Below are positions 26,896 to 54,309 of a DNA stretch of 64,000 nt, piece by piece. The notes beneath the pieces are model-generated. The model searched no databases, had not been told where the DNA came from, and worked only from the letters and a program-made list of their open reading frames with translations. Numbering within the stretch: the stretch's first letter is position 1; the number at the start of each line of letters is the position of its first letter. Location of the stretch: IMG/VR virus record IMGVR_UViG_3300042261_002385, positions 186,001-250,000 of that record; one strand, written 5' to 3'. Made by a program: the position numbers and the translations under genes.

Positions 26896-27429
26896 TTACT
26901 CATTACCAAATAAATACTCAAGTTTCTTATCTCTTATATACGATTTCTTCAAAGAATCAAGAGTAGTAGTTACATTTTTTACTTTATCATTAATCCAGAT
27001 TTCACTTTTCTGTAAATCTTTATATTCTTTTCTTATATGAAAGTCATTAACATCATCGCCTGTTTTATATTGAAACTCTCTAGCGACAATTATTGAGTCT
27101 AAATTAAATTTAGAAATTTCAGAAGTATACATCCAAAGATTATTTTTAGAAATATTCCAAAAATCAAAAACTAGCAAATCAACTCTAAACAAGTTTGATT
27201 TGTTATTTAATTTTTCAGAAAACTCATTGAAATCTCTAAATTCTATTTTATTATCTAAATAATGAAATAGACATAGGTCATGATATTTACTTGAAGAACT
27301 CGGTTTATTTGGAGTAAATAGAACATAATTACGACCAGCTAAATCAAAAAAGTTTACTATCTGACTTACCCCAGAAGCGACTTCACTGATATCACCGGTA
27401 AAATAATTATATTTTTTTAGGTCTACCAT
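26896..27429 (-). CDS. Hypothetical protein
   Basis: 177-aa ORF ending IRDKKLEYLF. Confidence 0.7.
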   Translation of the reverse strand: MVDLKKYNYFTGDISEVASGVSQIVNFFDLAGRNYVLFTPNKPSSSSKYHDLCLFHYLDNKIEFRDFNEFSEKLNNKSNLFRVDLLVFDFWNISKNNLWMYTSEISKFNLDSIIVAREFQYKTGDDVNDFHIRKEYKDLQKSEIWINDKVKNVTTTLDSLKKSYIRDKKLEYLFGNE

Positions 27430-35311: not shown

Positions 35312-36070
35312 ATGAATAATGGACATTCTTTCACTTACATAATCGGATATAGACACAAAATCGACCGATTACAAAATCTCAGAAGAGTTTTAGACTGGAT
35401 AAACGGTTTTCAAGGAGTTGATGTAATTGTCGTTGAACAAGATACTCACTCTAAAATTTCACATCTAAGCCTCAGATGTCGTCATCTATTTCTTAAATCT
35501 GACAAACCATATAATAAATCCTGGTCATTCAACTACGCCACAAAAATGGCTAAGTCAAACATAATTGTTTTCGCAGACTCGGATTTAATAATGCACCCAA
35601 ATCAACTAATTGAAGGTTTAAAAGAAATTGAAAATTATGAAATGGTAAATCCATATAAATCAGTCATTGATTTAGAACCACAAGAAACAAATCTTCAACT
35701 TGAACAAATTATACAAATTAACAGACCTGGACGTGGTGAGACGGACCATCAAAAAGTTCCAATCTGTGGTGGAATATGTATATTCAGAAGAGAAACAATA
35801 AATAAAATTGGAGGTTGGAATGAAAATTTCATAGGTTGGGGAGCAGAAGATGATTTTGTATCGGTGAAAGTTCAACATTTTTTAAATTGGAAACAAATGG
35901 ACTATAGATGTTATCATTTGTTTCACACAAGAGAACAACCTAATATGAATGAATATCAAAAAAACTTAAACTTACTTCAACAGTTAGCAAAACTACCTAA
36001 GGAAGAACTTTGGAAAATCAGTCACAGAGATGTTCCAAAAAACGGTATGAAAAATAAGTATGAAGGATAA
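35312..36070 (+). CDS. GT2/GT7-type glycosyltransferase
   Basis: VEQD, YNKSW, FADSD, IGGWNENFIGWGAEDD, HLFH. Confidence 0.88.
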   Translation: MNNGHSFTYIIGYRHKIDRLQNLRRVLDWINGFQGVDVIVVEQDTHSKISHLSLRCRHLFLKSDKPYNKSWSFNYATKMAKSNIIVFADSDLIMHPNQLIEGLKEIENYEMVNPYKSVIDLEPQETNLQLEQIIQINRPGRGETDHQKVPICGGICIFRRETINKIGGWNENFIGWGAEDDFVSVKVQHFLNWKQMDYRCYHLFHTREQPNMNEYQKNLNLLQQLAKLPKEELWKISHRDVPKNGMKNKYEG

Positions 36071-36503
36071 GAAAGATTTACTAGATAAATGGTCATCTAT
36101 TTTAGGTTCAGTAGGACTGACTGGTTCACAATTTTCAGAAAACCAATCTAATAAAATATTAGAGCAGAATAATAAAGTATCTGAATTTCCAACAATTTTA
36201 CCAATGGCTATGAAAGTATCTGCTCAAACAATTGGTCAAAATTTAGTCACTGTTAAGCCAATGCCTCATTCTGGAATGTCTCAAGAAGAAATTGATAGAA
36301 TTAATGCTGAAATTAAAAAAGAAAACCGTGATGGTAAAATTGACGCTATCGTAGAAGGAAAAAATTATAAAGAATTAAAACCTGAAGAACATCCTGATTG
36401 GAATTTAGGTCCAATTGGTAGTATATTTTATTTAGATTATAAATACAGTCACAAAAAAACTCGAAGAGCTGGTAAAAAACATAAAAAGAAATCAAATGAA
36501 TAA
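36060..36503 (+). CDS. Short protein carrying the N-terminal segment of a T4 gp23-like major capsid protein
   Basis: KWSSIL...PTILPMAMKVSAQTIGQNLVTVKPM...GPIGSIFYLDYKY resembles the gp23 V-x-PM-x-GP-x-G segment, split by a charged insert. Confidence 0.6.
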   Translation: MKDKKDLLDKWSSILGSVGLTGSQFSENQSNKILEQNNKVSEFPTILPMAMKVSAQTIGQNLVTVKPMPHSGMSQEEIDRINAEIKKENRDGKIDAIVEGKNYKELKPEEHPDWNLGPIGSIFYLDYKYSHKKTRRAGKKHKKKSNE

Positions 36504-36624
36504 GTATGTATCACCTGGTGTTTATGTTAAAGAAGTAGATATTTCTACTACATACTACCCTCCAAAAAAATGGACGAGGAATAAGAAAATTGCTAGAATT
36601 TTTTGTTCAGAAAACAAATGTTAA
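36496..36624 (+). CDS. 42-aa ORF carrying a tail-sheath N-terminal motif (not in the ORF track)
   Basis: Translated by hand: MNKYVSPGVYVKEVDISTTYYPPKKWTRNKKIARIFCSENKC; ATG overlaps the previous stop by 8 nt. Confidence 0.6.
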   Translation: MNKYVSPGVYVKEVDISTTYYPPKKWTRNKKIARIFCSENKC

Positions 36625-36643
36625 GATATATAATATAATAATT

Positions 36644-50310: not shown

Positions 50311-53300
50311 TTATCCATTGATAAATCCACCGGCTGCGATAGCTCCTGTTCTAAGTATTGTCACATTGTTTACAATGATACCCATACCTTTGATTGGTTC
50401 TACATAAGTATCAAGAACACCAATTTGGTTATCAATAATTTCTGGAGTATTATTTTCTTCATCCATTTTATTGAAGTAATTGTATAAACCATTCTTACTT
50501 ACATATGTTTCACAGATAACATCCGCTCTTAATTTAATATCAGCTCTTACATCAGCTGTGTTGAATTTCCACTGGAAGTCTAACAACATTCTTGATAATT
50601 CTCTTTCAAGCTCAATCAATACCTCTCTTACGTGGATGTAAGATAGTGCTGATTTTACAAGTGTCTGAGCTGTATTTTCAGTCTCAATAATGAATCCTCT
50701 GTTTCTTTTGAACACAAGTGGGTTCATTTGAGCTTGATTCAAGAATTCAATATCTTCTGGAGTGAAGTCTTGTTCAATAGAATTGATACCTGTAATTCTA
50801 CCATTCGTAACACCAGCTGCAATAGTCCATGGAGTTACATTTCCTACATTTGAAATATGTTTAGCCATGTAAGTTGTTGCAACAAACGGTGCTGGTGGAT
50901 GGTCTAACGGTCTACCATTATCATTAATATTAACATAAGGGAAGAAGTAACCTACACAAGTAGTTCCTGCTCCATCACCAAATGAGTAAAGGAATGCTGG
51001 ATTACTTTCTGGATCTCCTCCTTTAGCAACGTATTCCATCTGTAAAACACCTTCAGTATTTACGAAAGTAGGTGAAGAAGAATTTTTAAACATTCTCGCA
51101 GATGGCATGTTGATAAATCCAAAAGCATCTAATCTATCACCACAAATATCTAGTAACTGTTGTTTGCTTCTTTCTGTTAAACCTAATCCAAAAGAGTCAA
51201 CTAAGTATCTGAAGTCAATTGCCTCTTTGTTTGTCAATGCCTTAAATAGTGGAGTTCCTTTAGCAACTAAATTCAAAATTGAATTTTGTCTTGCTTCAGT
51301 TCCATCAGGCATCGAAGCGTTTCTAATTCTAAATCCTTTCAACGAAAGTGCTTTATAAGTAGTTGCGTATTGATCTACTGTAGTATATCTTTGAGTCTGT
51401 AATTCACCACCTGAGAATCTTGTTGCGATTCTAGAATCACAAGTCACCTCAGTCAATGAAGCATCACCCGAATATTGTCTTTTTGACAAAATTCTTGTTA
51501 ATTTTCTTGGATATTGACCAGTCTGAAGAGCAGTTGAATCATAGTATGCCTCTAAGAAATCTCCAACTTTTACCTCAGAATATCTCTCACCATTTATAAG
51601 AATCTTATTTGGAACTTGAACATACCCAGCTGGAATCTCAATCTCAATAGTTTGTTTGTAGTTTGATTTTTCAGATTTGATATAGAATGTATTGTTAGCC
51701 AACGCAGCAACATCAACATCTGTTGTCAAATCTGAGTCTTTAAACTCCACATACAATGTAGAGCTGCTATCCGTATACATTCTTAAATAATGTTTTACTA
51801 AATAGTCGTATACTCTATTCACATCAGTAAGTTGTTCAAAAACTACTTCTTCCGAAACAGTGTAAGCGTAATACTCAGATGAGTTAGAACCATTTCCATA
51901 TCCCAGAAGTCCAGCAATTTGTTGAGGTGTTTTACCATTGAAAGCTGTTACTTGATTTGTTGCAAGTGTAAATGAACCAGTATTTAACGTTGAATCGGGG
52001 AAATATAGTTGCTCAAAAGTAGCTAAATTTATTTCAGTGTCCCAGTTTGGCACATCTGATTGAAATACTATATAATCATATCCTGCCCACGACTGGGTAG
52101 TTCCACCGTTTGTTGCCTCCTCTCCATCTACGAATAATACACTAACAGTAGTTCCAAGTAAAGTTGCGTTACTGGCAGATGCTCCAGAATCACCTAAGAA
52201 TAATCTGTTACTGTAAAAGTAGTCTTTTGTATTAATTTGACCATCATAATTTTTAGTGTAGAAGTTTGAATATTTACCCACAACACCTATGTTGTTGAAA
52301 TCAGCAGTGTCCGATTTAGTCTGAACACCTTCACTTCCAAGTATAAATTCATTATCTTCAGTATAAATTACTAAATAACCATTTAGAATATCAGCCAATT
52401 GAGCTGTAGTCAATCCAGTATCCAACCTAAATGACTTATTAAGAACTGAACTTTGAACAATGTCAGAAATAGTTATATTTTCAAAACTATATTTTTCATA
52501 AGTAACTGGATTAAGGACTATTGACATTCTGTTTTTGTTTGGACTGTCAATCAAGTTTACTAATCTATTAAACATTTTGAATTTTCTCCACTGTTTATAG
52601 TTTGTAACAGATGGTGTTTCATTTGTGCCTGGAAACTCAATTTTGATGATGCCAGAACCAGCTGTTACTTCGGAAATATAATAATCACTTGATGAATAAG
52701 TTCCAAAGTCATAATCAATATACTCGGACGTTCCAACCGTAACATCTTCAACATTAAATGACAGTGGTGATACAAACGATTGAGAAGCTACTCCAAGTTC
52801 GATGTATCCTAAAACTATGTCAGTAGCCCCAACTGCTGGATTGACACCAACTGTCAAACTGTTTACCACTGAAATCTCACCAGTATTATCTAATACAAAT
52901 GCTGAAGAGTAAGTAGCTAAAGTAGTACTAAAAGGATAATCGGTAGCATTCATAGTCAAAGTAGCAGTAGCAGCGATAGGAACATAAGTATTTCCTATGA
53001 CTGCATAAGCACCAGGACCAACACTATATGTTACACAAATAGAAGTTGTAGCTGTAACAATTCCAGGAGTAGATGAAACTAAATCAACGTTGTAAACCGA
53101 TCCTTCACCAAACCAAGCTGTTCTCTCTGAGTTTTCCACAATACCACTTGTTAACATAGATTCAGCAAACTCGTTACCGGGAGTCAAATCGAATCCGTAA
53201 GCGTGAGGTGTTTGTGATACATAAGAGTAAGAACCATAAGATGGACCCAAATCACCTAACATCGCAGTCACATTACCAGGTAAGTCAAGTGGAGTAGATA

Positions 53301-54309
53301 CTATTTTGATATCTTCTGTGATTGTCTCTCTGTATGATAGAAAATCAATTGTGTTTTCACCACCATCAGCAATTGTATTACCTAATAAGTCTAACACACC
53401 GTTGTAGTAGTCAGCCTCAACTAAGTCATTGTTGAATGCACAGAAAACACCAGTTCTATCAGTATCTCTATTGATAGTAGTTTCAATAAAGATGTTTCTA
53501 CCATTTAAATCTCTAAAATATGGAATCAAAGAAAGACCTTCGTAGTAAGCCAATGTTGTTACATTTCTATCGTTTGCGAAGTTTCTAATCTGAGCTTTTC
53601 TCAAACCGGATGCGTTGAAGTATGAACTCCATCTTGGATCAACAGCTAACTCTTGGTAGTTAGACCAATCACCTGCAACAATAACAACATCTACAAGATA
53701 ATCAGAAGCGAAGTCTTGAGGATTAACATAAGATGGCATTTTCTCAATTGAACCATACCATTCTAACAATGTTCTATCAAAACCAGTCAAAGTTGATTTA
53801 AAAATAAATACTGAAACATATCTGTCTGAAAGATTCGTAATGTTGAATGCTCTTTCAGTATATCCAGAATTATTTTTAGTAAGATTAATAAATGAATCAG
53901 TATCTCTCTTCCAGAAACCTGTTGTATCAAAGAATCTTCTGTAAGGTCCTTCTCTTTCGATATCATTATTATATCCTGCTGAAGAAGAAAGTGATTGATA
54001 TTCAATTTTATCTAAAGTATCATCAGTTAATAATAGGTTCATAGCGAAAACTGGCGCCGTTTCTACCATTTTAGAAACTGTTCTATGAAAGAATGAACCT
54101 TTTCTTTCTAATCCTCTATCTAATTGACCGAAAATAGACTCCAACTCATTAGTTGTAGTTATTCTAATCGGTGTATTAACAGGCCCTTTTCTTGAAACAC
54201 CAATAACGAGGTTTGTGATACCTTCAACTACTGGGCTTGTGATTACAGACTTGTCAAATTCTTCTAAGAAGATTCCTGGTCTCTTGTATTTTCCAATTTG
54301 AATTGCCAT
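50311..54309 (-). CDS. gp18: Tail sheath protein with large central insertion
   Basis: N-terminal RPGIFLEEFD, GVSRKGPVNTP, FGQ; C-terminal NPL, TAQTLVKSALSYIHVREVLI, DEENNTPEIIDN, VEPIKG. Confidence 0.93.
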   Translation of the reverse strand: MAIQIGKYKRPGIFLEEFDKSVITSPVVEGITNLVIGVSRKGPVNTPIRITTTNELESIFGQLDRGLERKGSFFHRTVSKMVETAPVFAMNLLLTDDTLDKIEYQSLSSSAGYNNDIEREGPYRRFFDTTGFWKRDTDSFINLTKNNSGYTERAFNITNLSDRYVSVFIFKSTLTGFDRTLLEWYGSIEKMPSYVNPQDFASDYLVDVVIVAGDWSNYQELAVDPRWSSYFNASGLRKAQIRNFANDRNVTTLAYYEGLSLIPYFRDLNGRNIFIETTINRDTDRTGVFCAFNNDLVEADYYNGVLDLLGNTIADGGENTIDFLSYRETITEDIKIVSTPLDLPGNVTAMLGDLGPSYGSYSYVSQTPHAYGFDLTPGNEFAESMLTSGIVENSERTAWFGEGSVYNVDLVSSTPGIVTATTSICVTYSVGPGAYAVIGNTYVPIAATATLTMNATDYPFSTTLATYSSAFVLDNTGEISVVNSLTVGVNPAVGATDIVLGYIELGVASQSFVSPLSFNVEDVTVGTSEYIDYDFGTYSSSDYYISEVTAGSGIIKIEFPGTNETPSVTNYKQWRKFKMFNRLVNLIDSPNKNRMSIVLNPVTYEKYSFENITISDIVQSSVLNKSFRLDTGLTTAQLADILNGYLVIYTEDNEFILGSEGVQTKSDTADFNNIGVVGKYSNFYTKNYDGQINTKDYFYSNRLFLGDSGASASNATLLGTTVSVLFVDGEEATNGGTTQSWAGYDYIVFQSDVPNWDTEINLATFEQLYFPDSTLNTGSFTLATNQVTAFNGKTPQQIAGLLGYGNGSNSSEYYAYTVSEEVVFEQLTDVNRVYDYLVKHYLRMYTDSSSTLYVEFKDSDLTTDVDVAALANNTFYIKSEKSNYKQTIEIEIPAGYVQVPNKILINGERYSEVKVGDFLEAYYDSTALQTGQYPRKLTRILSKRQYSGDASLTEVTCDSRIATRFSGGELQTQRYTTVDQYATTYKALSLKGFRIRNASMPDGTEARQNSILNLVAKGTPLFKALTNKEAIDFRYLVDSFGLGLTERSKQQLLDICGDRLDAFGFINMPSARMFKNSSSPTFVNTEGVLQMEYVAKGGDPESNPAFLYSFGDGAGTTCVGYFFPYVNINDNGRPLDHPPAPFVATTYMAKHISNVGNVTPWTIAAGVTNGRITGINSIEQDFTPEDIEFLNQAQMNPLVFKRNRGFIIETENTAQTLVKSALSYIHVREVLIELERELSRMLLDFQWKFNTADVRADIKLRADVICETYVSKNGLYNYFNKMDEENNTPEIIDNQIGVLDTYVEPIKGMGIIVNNVTILRTGAIAAGGFING

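Follow-up and report, generated by a model that had tools for sequence, protein, structure and literature searches.

Why would a giant freshwater phage carry, back to back, two small open reading frames (ORFs) that resemble the front ends of a major capsid protein (MCP) and a tail-sheath protein? We addressed this question using a 64,000-nucleotide stretch (the window; positions 186,001 to 250,000 of IMG/VR record IMGVR_UViG_3300042261_002385) of the 436-kb genome of such a phage. A preliminary description made from the sequence alone had noted an ORF with a gp23-like segment interrupted by a charged insert containing RDGKIDAI, overlapped by an unannotated 42-aa ORF with a sheath-like N-terminus followed by RNKKIARIF. 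Both ORFs were found on the plus strand, at 36060–36503 (147 aa; hereafter mini-MCP) and 36496–36624 (42 aa; hereafter mini-sheath), and the observation was thus confirmed. Database searches retrieved 166 proteins of similar length related to mini-MCP and 261 homologues of mini-sheath, showing that both belong to families conserved across a clade of huge uncultured phages. These families are abundant in freshwater and marine metagenomes but have no annotation and are usually missed or labelled hypothetical; neither protein matched a described family in Pfam, PHROG or NCBIfam.

Since conservation and similarity to gp23 and gp18 had been named beforehand among the points on which the observation would stand or fall, we compared the two proteins with the phage's own structural proteins. 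Residues 46–69 of mini-MCP matched the 590-aa MCP of the same genome (genome positions 267436–269208, outside the window; residues 97–120) at 16 of 24 positions, with a pairwise E-value of 2e-8, or 3e-6 against all large ORFs of the genome. At the family level, a profile–profile comparison (hhalign) with the MCP N-termini of the clade gave 99.6% (E 1.6e-23), and the best PDB profile hit was T4 gp23, residues 1–45 plus 90–120. The mini-MCP of the window itself had no Pfam hit at E up to 10, whereas 31 of 38 family members hit Pfam Gp23 (PF07068), albeit weakly (best E 3.2e-5), and the phage's own MCP hit it at 7e-29. Mini-sheath matched the N-terminus of the phage's own tail sheath (1332 aa; 50311–54309, minus strand; N-terminus MAIQIGKYKRPGIFLEEFD; PHROG tail sheath, E 8e-95) at 8 of 22 positions (E 0.002). 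The family-level comparison with the sheath N-termini of the clade gave 94% (E 1e-7), and the three best PDB hits were all phage sheath N-termini, residues 2–15. These results indicate that the two proteins are partial paralogues of this clade's own capsid and sheath proteins.

We next examined which parts of the parents were retained. In mini-MCP, residues 1–37 (36060–36170), which carry the invariant K10-W11 and G19, were similar to the MCP propeptide (delta region), aligning with MCP 6–45 and with T4 gp23 1–45. Residues 41–71 (36180–36272) were similar to the MCP N-arm, equivalent to T4 gp23 90–120, the conserved Gol region. An inserted module of about 45 aa that is absent from the MCP (residues 72–116; 36273–36407) followed, corresponding to the 'charged insert' of the preliminary description. 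It is a conserved module, for which a module-only profile found 259 clusters at 50% identity, and the only part that AlphaFold2 modelled with confidence (helix 75–99, pLDDT about 80–90, versus 63 for the protein); a search of the ESM Atlas for look-alikes gave nothing usable. Residues 90–98 in this module (RDGKIDAIV; 36327–36353) constitute a motif in which R90, K93 and I94, as well as the preceding N89, are invariant in the family. Residues 117–129 (GPIGSIFYLDYKY; 36408–36446), with invariant Y124, D126 and Y129, had been taken for a distant or C-terminal gp23 piece. We rejected this reading, because the segment is the strand that directly follows the arm in the MCP (MCP 121–133, GPKIDLLYVDFRY); this was read by eye for the present protein, and the homologous segment in L007, one of the related loci (L-numbered here), matched MCP 112–130 at 58% over 19 aa (E 2e-5). 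The protein ends with a strongly basic tail (HKKTRRAGKKHKKK...; 36447–36500), and 93 of 101 full-length family members had seven or more K/R in the last 16 residues. Homology thus covered only MCP 6–45 and 92–133, and AlphaFold2 found no globular fold, showing that mini-MCP lacks the complete HK97-type body and is a partial paralogue rather than a capsid protein.

Mini-sheath proved to be a short variant of a family of 37–83 aa, usually 58–70 aa, whose longer members continue into the next sheath segment. Its residues 1–17 (MNKYVSPGVYVKEVDIS; 36496–36546) were similar to the sheath N-terminal donor strand and contain the PGVY..E motif, and S6, P7, G8 and V9 are invariant or nearly so in the family. 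The motif R28–F36 (RNKKIARIF; 36577–36603), with invariant R28, K31 and I32, is an insertion relative to the sheath, lying in a 12-residue insertion in the profile alignment. No Pfam sheath domain (PF04984/PF17482), including the C-terminal handshake domain, was detected in mini-sheath, whereas the phage's own sheath has these domains at its C-terminus.

The start of mini-sheath lies inside the stop region of mini-MCP, in the +1 frame, with an 8-nt overlap (ATGAATAA; 36496–36503) that suggests translational coupling. The two genes were adjacent and start/stop-coupled in 18 of 28 related loci, with overlapping or abutting junctions in L003, L005, L008, L009 and L011, and in the present genome and in L005 the pair has moved as a unit to a new place. 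Both genes are under purifying selection: the dN/dS ratio of mini-MCP had a median of 0.33 and was 0.16–0.27 for close pairs, and that of mini-sheath was 0.15–0.36 for close pairs, while dS was about 1. That the two genes are expressed is inferred from sequence, since the only RNA-Seq-labelled runs containing this stretch are metagenomic libraries flagged as probably DNA. Upstream of mini-MCP, relatives share an inverted repeat resembling TTTCTATAA, whereas the dominant upstream motif of the present genome is AATATATA and the T4-type TATAAATA is not clearly used, leaving the timing of expression undecided.

The inserts in the two proteins share a helical motif, R-[DE]-x-K-[IL]-x-x-[IL]-[ILF]. 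The preliminary description had noted that a similar motif ends ORF 26896; this ORF (26896–27429) does end with it (IRDKKLEYLFGNE; RDKKLEYLF at 26908–26934, minus strand). What had not been foreseen is that the motif is a genome-wide C-terminal tag of unrelated small proteins: about 22 small ORFs carry it, with 27 C-terminal hits against 2.3 expected from shuffled sequences, and many carriers cluster at 351–436 kb, as in accessory or early regions. It is C-terminal in these carriers and in short mini-sheaths but internal in mini-MCP. The possibility that the motif is a DNA repeat or mobile element was rejected because codons at the conserved positions vary freely. The carriers are also not one paralogous family, since no BLAST matches remained once the motif was removed, and they have no Pfam or PHROG family.

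Together, these results support the earlier view that the side-by-side arrangement of the two fragments is deliberate. The accompanying interpretation, that they serve as decoys for defences sensing capsid or sheath proteins, as poisons against co-infecting phages or as assembly regulators, was only partly supported, as the data do not decide among these roles. What the analysis establishes is that the two ORFs are genuine genes, that they arose by partial duplication of the 5′ ends of the phage's own MCP and sheath genes, and that selection has kept only the N-terminal arm of each parent (the propeptide start, the N-arm and the first following strand of the MCP; the donor strand of the sheath) together with an inserted basic-amphipathic helix. 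Their expression, co-translation, binding and function are inferred. The T4 gp23 N-terminal region sits inside the unexpanded shell, probably on the scaffold, and later forms the arm and N-fist with extensive inter-capsomer contacts (PMC9546572), and N- and C-terminal strands of sheath subunits are donated to neighbouring subunits in the 'handshake' (PMC5807055). The mini-proteins would therefore most likely dock on free MCP and sheath subunits at these interface sites, acting as caps or chaperone-like regulators that keep the two self-polymerising late proteins from assembling off-pathway (polyheads, polysheaths) or that time their assembly. In this view, the shared helix would couple both to a common, still unidentified partner, which more than 20 other small proteins of the phage would engage through the same motif at their C-termini. 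The absence of an autonomous fold apart from the module helix fits segments that fold only on a partner, but a complex prediction for the two mini-proteins gave no answer and is not evidence either way.

This interpretation is our preferred one but remains tentative, falling short of an even chance. The pair does not sit in the structural module; in most relatives it lies among replication and recombination genes, in front of a T5orf172 gene and an SbcC-like gene. The mini-proteins also evolve much faster than their parents (mini-MCP is 29–45% identical where the MCP is 71–75%), as an arms-race protein would. In addition, the mini-sheath strand (SPGVYVKEVD) is closer to the general sheath consensus than to the clade's invariant RPGIFLEEFD, and a cap model does not by itself explain the shared motif or the basic tail. 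If it is right, huge phages keep small arm-only copies of their two main self-polymerising proteins as dedicated assembly regulators or decoys, a class of phage protein that has not been described. The shared motif points to a hub-and-tag network among the ORFan small proteins of megaphages, which would give a direct experimental handle on dozens of proteins of unknown function, and also shows that a peptide module can be spliced repeatedly into fragments of a capsid protein.

The rapid evolution and the non-structural neighbourhood would suit counter-defence adaptors or decoys, which would display the most conserved arm segments to a host sensor and either hand whatever binds them to a hub such as a protease through the motif or simply soak up the sensor without activating it. 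The minimal 'strand + linker + C-terminal motif' architecture of short mini-sheaths and the sharing of the motif with about 22 ORFans are consistent with this. Moreover, the retained MCP segment is the equivalent of the Gol region, the most conserved part of gp23, which is sensed with EF-Tu by the Lit exclusion system (PMC3014915), and bacterial Avs sensors recognise MCPs and other core structural proteins (bioRxiv 10.64898/2026.01.04.697583). However, no defence sensor of a sheath N-terminus or an MCP N-arm is known for this clade, whose host is unknown; the Gol peptide activates rather than blocks the defence, so that a free copy would be harmful; literature searches found no similar anti-defence family and no comparable case; and the nature of the hub is pure inference. 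We consider this reading unlikely. A bolder form, in which the motif is a common tag wiring more than 20 unrelated small proteins to one hub and the mini-proteins are 'bait plus tag' adaptors delivering host sensors or surplus subunits to it, would be a phage counterpart of the motif mimicry and targeted-removal strategies of eukaryotic viruses; it is not excluded but is less likely still.

About as doubtful is the possibility that mini-MCP is a prohead-core or internal virion protein, which would use its propeptide copy to enter the prohead on the scaffold, be trimmed by the T4-type prohead protease and lie with its basic tail on the packaged DNA, resembling T4 gp68 and the internal proteins, with mini-sheath as a minor tail component. 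In keeping with this, the propeptide-like N-terminus is retained, 94 of 101 members have an [IL]-x-E triplet just upstream of the arm (although this triplet is too short to be evidence on its own), the genome has a T4-like protease–scaffold–MCP order with a weak Peptidase_S77 hit (E 1.5e-5) next to the scaffold, T4 gp68 has a comparable basic tail, and T4 core proteins are packaged in hundreds of copies (PMC9546572). However, the coupled mini-sheath is left unexplained, the gene is not in the head module, the inserted module showed no similarity to T4 gp67, gp68, gp22, gp21 or Inh, and the motif cannot be a capsid-packaging tag because one carrier is a three-helix membrane protein. Poisoning of the capsids or sheaths of co-infecting myophages, resident prophages or tailocins appears improbable: although the mini-sheath strand matches the general consensus (YxSPGVYVEEV in three solved sheaths) better than the clade's own, the mini-MCP arm is most similar to the phage's own MCP (67% over the arm) and would poison self first, the later part of long mini-sheaths aligns with the clade's own sheath, and there is no evidence of exclusion genes nearby. 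That the genes are non-functional leftovers, or promoter-plus-5′-end duplications surviving by chance, is very improbable despite their origin by partial duplication and the presence of such remnants in T4, being contradicted by intact reading frames in hundreds of divergent lineages, dN/dS well below 1, invariant key residues, conserved coupling and relocation as a unit.

Among described systems, the T4 gp23 N-terminal region is closest to mini-MCP, whose profile aligns with it collinearly over the part that contacts the scaffold and portal and later forms inter-capsomer arms, with the EF-Tu-binding Gol segment at its core. In contrast, mini-MCP is a free-standing protein lacking the HK97-type body, with a helical module inserted and a basic tail added; no T4 gene encodes such a fragment, and a tblastn search found no cultured-phage record with one. 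Similarly, the system closest to mini-sheath is the N-terminal donor strand of contractile sheath proteins (the handshake of phage, pyocin and T6SS sheaths): mini-sheath keeps the invariant SPGV[YF]..E.D strand at the very N-terminus and, in long variants, the following KGP.N.P...F..FG segment, but it is 37–83 aa long instead of 500–1300 aa, has none of the sheath domains and carries a 12–17-aa basic motif inserted after the strand. T4 alt.-1 and alt.-2 are likewise small ORFs, annotated in the T4 record as an old duplication of the first part of a virion protein gene (alt), but they are one lineage-restricted remnant, whereas here two families with a shared inserted motif are conserved across a whole clade.

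[quoted passage not shown] The T4 tails ...SLDFLFG and ...SLDFLYEAND share a hydrophobic-D-x-hydrophobic-hydrophobic core with ...KIDTILS and ...KIDDIFDDID here. However, the present motif has conserved R and K residues that are absent from the hydrophobic/acidic T4 tails, and it is carried by about 22 small ORFans rather than by polymerase and transcription factors. No clamp could be identified in this genome: the gp45 Pfam families are absent, and a 257-aa candidate (genome positions 315803–316576) had no Pfam, PHROG, NCBIfam or PDB hit and an AlphaFold2 pLDDT of 41. In principle, the proposed mimicry resembles that of SaPI1 CpmB and the 80alpha scaffolding protein, in which a small protein copies only the short interaction segment of a morphogenetic protein and thereby redirects or modulates assembly. 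No sequence similarity is known between the two cases, and CpmB is encoded by a parasite of the phage and copies the C-terminal helix of the scaffold, whereas here the phage itself copies the N-terminal arms of its own capsid and sheath proteins.

The two ORFs lie in a 436-kb virus record with a G+C content of 31%, of which the window covers bases 186001-250000. The major capsid protein (MCP) of this phage is 71-75% identical to those of the >630-kb freshwater and subsurface "megaphages" LR756502 and LR745206 (PMC9723777) and of two IMG/VR fragments, and the stretch itself occurs in many lake, river and drinking-water metagenomes. The head module is T4-like, with a weak S77 protease hit followed by the scaffold and a gp23-type MCP, while the 1332-aa ORF at 50311-54309 (minus strand) is the tail sheath. 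Only 17 of the 547 crude genes of the genome have a Shine-Dalgarno-like core upstream, as expected for a host, such as Bacteroidota, that does not rely on Shine-Dalgarno pairing.

We first confirmed the observation that two coupled mini-ORFs carry N-terminal pieces of capsid and sheath proteins. ORF 36060-36503 (147 aa; mini-MCP) and ORF 36496-36624 (42 aa; mini-sheath) exist as stated in the preliminary description and overlap by 8 nt, ATGAATAA. Residues 46-69 of the mini-MCP match the phage's own MCP at 16/24 identities (E 2e-8), and its N-terminus (K10-W11 ... G19-x-T-G) mirrors that of the MCP. The mini-sheath starts like the sheath (8/22 identities, E 0.002). The mini-sheath is in the +1 frame in most loci, the junction is A-rich, and a +1 frameshift fusion of the two ORFs cannot be excluded. 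An exact T4 late-promoter octamer, TATAAATA, lies at 36438-36445 inside the mini-MCP coding sequence (the D-Y-K-Y codons), 51-58 nt upstream of the mini-sheath start, but it is probably a coincidence of codon choice, since relatives with F-D-Y-Q-Y or M-D-F-K-Y lack it. AATATATA / TTAATATATA is 23-fold enriched within 60 nt upstream of genes (129 of 547 genes) and is probably the main promoter element; a copy (GATATATAATATAA) lies at 36625-36643, right after the mini-sheath stop and in front of the next gene, and the element also lies upstream of the MCP and sheath genes.

Next, we examined whether the two ORFs are conserved. A search restricted to proteins of similar length found 166 relatives of the 147-aa protein, down to 47% identity, and 261 relatives of the small ORF, many of which had been called independently by several annotation pipelines. 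A profile of the inserted module of the mini-MCP alone retrieved 259 clusters at 50% identity. Among closer relatives, pairwise dN/dS was 0.16-0.27 for the mini-MCP and 0.15-0.36 for the mini-sheath, with dS near 0.6-1. In 18 of 28 loci with a complete mini-MCP, a mini-sheath follows directly with overlapping or abutting stop and start, whereas one relative's locus (L004) has a variant that has lost the PGVY strand but kept the basic motif. In most relatives the pair lies in a conserved block in front of a T5orf172 gene and an SbcC-like gene; a 110-aa T5orf172-domain gene following the pair was seen in loci L003, L004, L008, L009, L011, L036, L046, L047, L050 and L053. In this genome that block sits at about 117-126 kb without the pair, with the T5orf172-domain gene at 121200-121532 (minus strand) of the genome, while the pair sits 100 kb away next to a glycosyltransferase gene, as in locus L005. 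The pair therefore moved as a unit. The gene upstream of the pair (35312-36070) is a family-2 glycosyltransferase whose stop overlaps the mini-MCP start, and two genes downstream lies a "putative phage metallopeptidase" (PF18894; 37104-37532).

We then traced the origin of the ORFs by profile comparisons. The mini-MCP family aligned to the first 150 residues of the clade's MCPs with a probability of 99.6% (E 1.6e-23), and the mini-sheath family aligned to the first 75 residues of the clade's sheaths with a probability of 94% (E 1e-7), the basic motif appearing there as a 12-residue insertion. In addition, 31 of 38 mini-MCPs hit Pfam Gp23 weakly. The best PDB profile hit of the mini-MCP was T4 gp23, with two collinear pieces at 1-45 and 90-120, and the three best PDB hits of the mini-sheath profile were all phage sheath proteins, at residues 2-15. 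In the 147-aa protein, residues 1-37 correspond to the MCP propeptide start, residues 41-71 to the MCP N-arm and residues 117-129 to the strand that follows the arm in the MCP (MCP 121-133), while residues 72-116 are an inserted module and residues 130-147 a basic tail. The variable Gly/Ser-rich MCP stretch (about 50-90) is deleted, and in one subfamily the module sits before, rather than after, the V-x-P-M turn. Typical mini-sheaths are 58-70 aa and continue after the motif into the next sheath segment (..KGP.N.P....F..F), whereas the 42-aa version studied here belongs to a short subfamily (37-42 aa) that ends just after the motif. The mini-proteins evolve much faster than their parents: the mini-MCP is 29-45% identical where the MCP is 71-75%, and the mini-sheath about 50% where the sheath N-terminus is 59-93%.

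In relatives (L006:3403-4468 and L007:3616-4285, two loci of relatives), the 45-aa helical module is also spliced into other MCP fragments, namely the spine-helix region (about 335-390), the C-terminal strands (about 507-552) and, in a 323-aa protein, in front of an A-domain half. In L006 one 250-aa ORF reads like the end of one MCP copy fused to the start of the next, with modules inserted, and this genome has a 250-aa MCP-derived ORF at 425055-425807, outside the window, with a weak module. The mini-MCP is thus one member of a set of reduced, module-bearing MCP derivatives.

The insert of the mini-MCP (N-R-D-G-K-I-D-A-I-V) and that of the mini-sheath (R-N-K-K-I-A-R-I-F) fit one pattern, R-[DE]-x-K-[IL]-x-x-[IL]-[ILF], and their key residues are invariant in each family. 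A strict pattern occurred 28 times in the 547 crude genes, against 1.55 ± 1.3 in shuffles, and a relaxed pattern lay in the last 16 residues of 27 proteins, against 2.3 expected. About 22 carriers, unrelated small ORFs, have the motif within six residues of the C-terminus; one is ORF 26896 in the window (motif at 26908-26934, minus strand), and others are at 120675-120893, 319791-320021 and 392612-392827 of the genome. The carriers are not similar to one another outside the motif and have no known family. Thirteen of them lie at 373-436 kb, and one is a three-helix membrane protein. Codons at the conserved positions vary, so the conservation is at the peptide rather than the nucleotide level. 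The motif also ends 12 of 245 ORFs in relatives' loci, against 0.25 expected.

The roles of the retained pieces are described for the parent proteins. In T4, the first 65 residues of gp23 are the cleaved propeptide, and residues 66-105 lie inside the unexpanded shell, probably on the scaffold; after expansion they form the arm and N-fist, which make extensive intra- and inter-capsomer contacts, and Met98 touches the portal whisker (PMC9546572). The segment equivalent to mini-MCP 41-71 is the Gol region, which is the most conserved part of gp23 and binds EF-Tu (PMC3014915). In contractile sheaths, the N-terminal strand of one subunit and the C-terminal strand of another complete a neighbor's sheet, the "handshake" (PMC5807055). 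Both mini-proteins are therefore made of interface arms and lack any globular body, in agreement with AlphaFold2, which modeled only the module helix (75-99) with confidence.

Together, these results establish that both ORFs are real, conserved, coupled genes, that they are partial paralogues of the MCP and sheath arms, and that they share an inserted motif that is a genome-wide C-terminal tag. Their expression, their binding partners and their function, on the other hand, are inferred from sequence alone, and the interpretation in the preliminary description, which offered decoys, assembly poisons or assembly regulators, is only partly supported. We tentatively prefer the view that they are interface mimics that would cap or chaperone unassembled MCP and sheath subunits, which follows from the role of the arms and from the classical tendency of gp23 and gp18 to form polyheads and polysheaths, polyheads being covered in reviews of the T4 head. 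Next in preference, they may be bait-plus-tag decoys or adaptors against host sensors, a possibility kept alive by the location outside the structural module and by the fast evolution. A role as prohead-core or internal proteins ranks below these: it is supported by the propeptide mimic, by an [IL]-x-E triplet in 94 of 101 members and by basic tails in 93 of 101, but it does not explain the mini-sheath, and the membrane-protein carrier argues against the motif being a capsid-packaging signal. Poisoning of competing contractile systems ranks lower still, and the view that the ORFs are decaying duplicates is rejected by the conservation.

The shared motif was also compared with the clamp-binding tails of T4. 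A 257-aa protein (315803-316576 of the genome) conserved next to the DNA polymerase (317542-318975) could by position be the sliding clamp, and in L006 and L007 it directly precedes the module-bearing ORFs. It has a repeated beta-alpha-beta-beta-beta pattern in a low-confidence model (pLDDT 41). However, no profile recognized this protein, and no clamp could be verified in this genome. The polymerase fragment ends ...VVMDIFSGFGKGGF. The core of the motif resembles the C-terminal clamp-binding tails of T4 gp43 and gp55, as read from the T4 record, and these T4 tails are interchangeable tags (PMC2988020).
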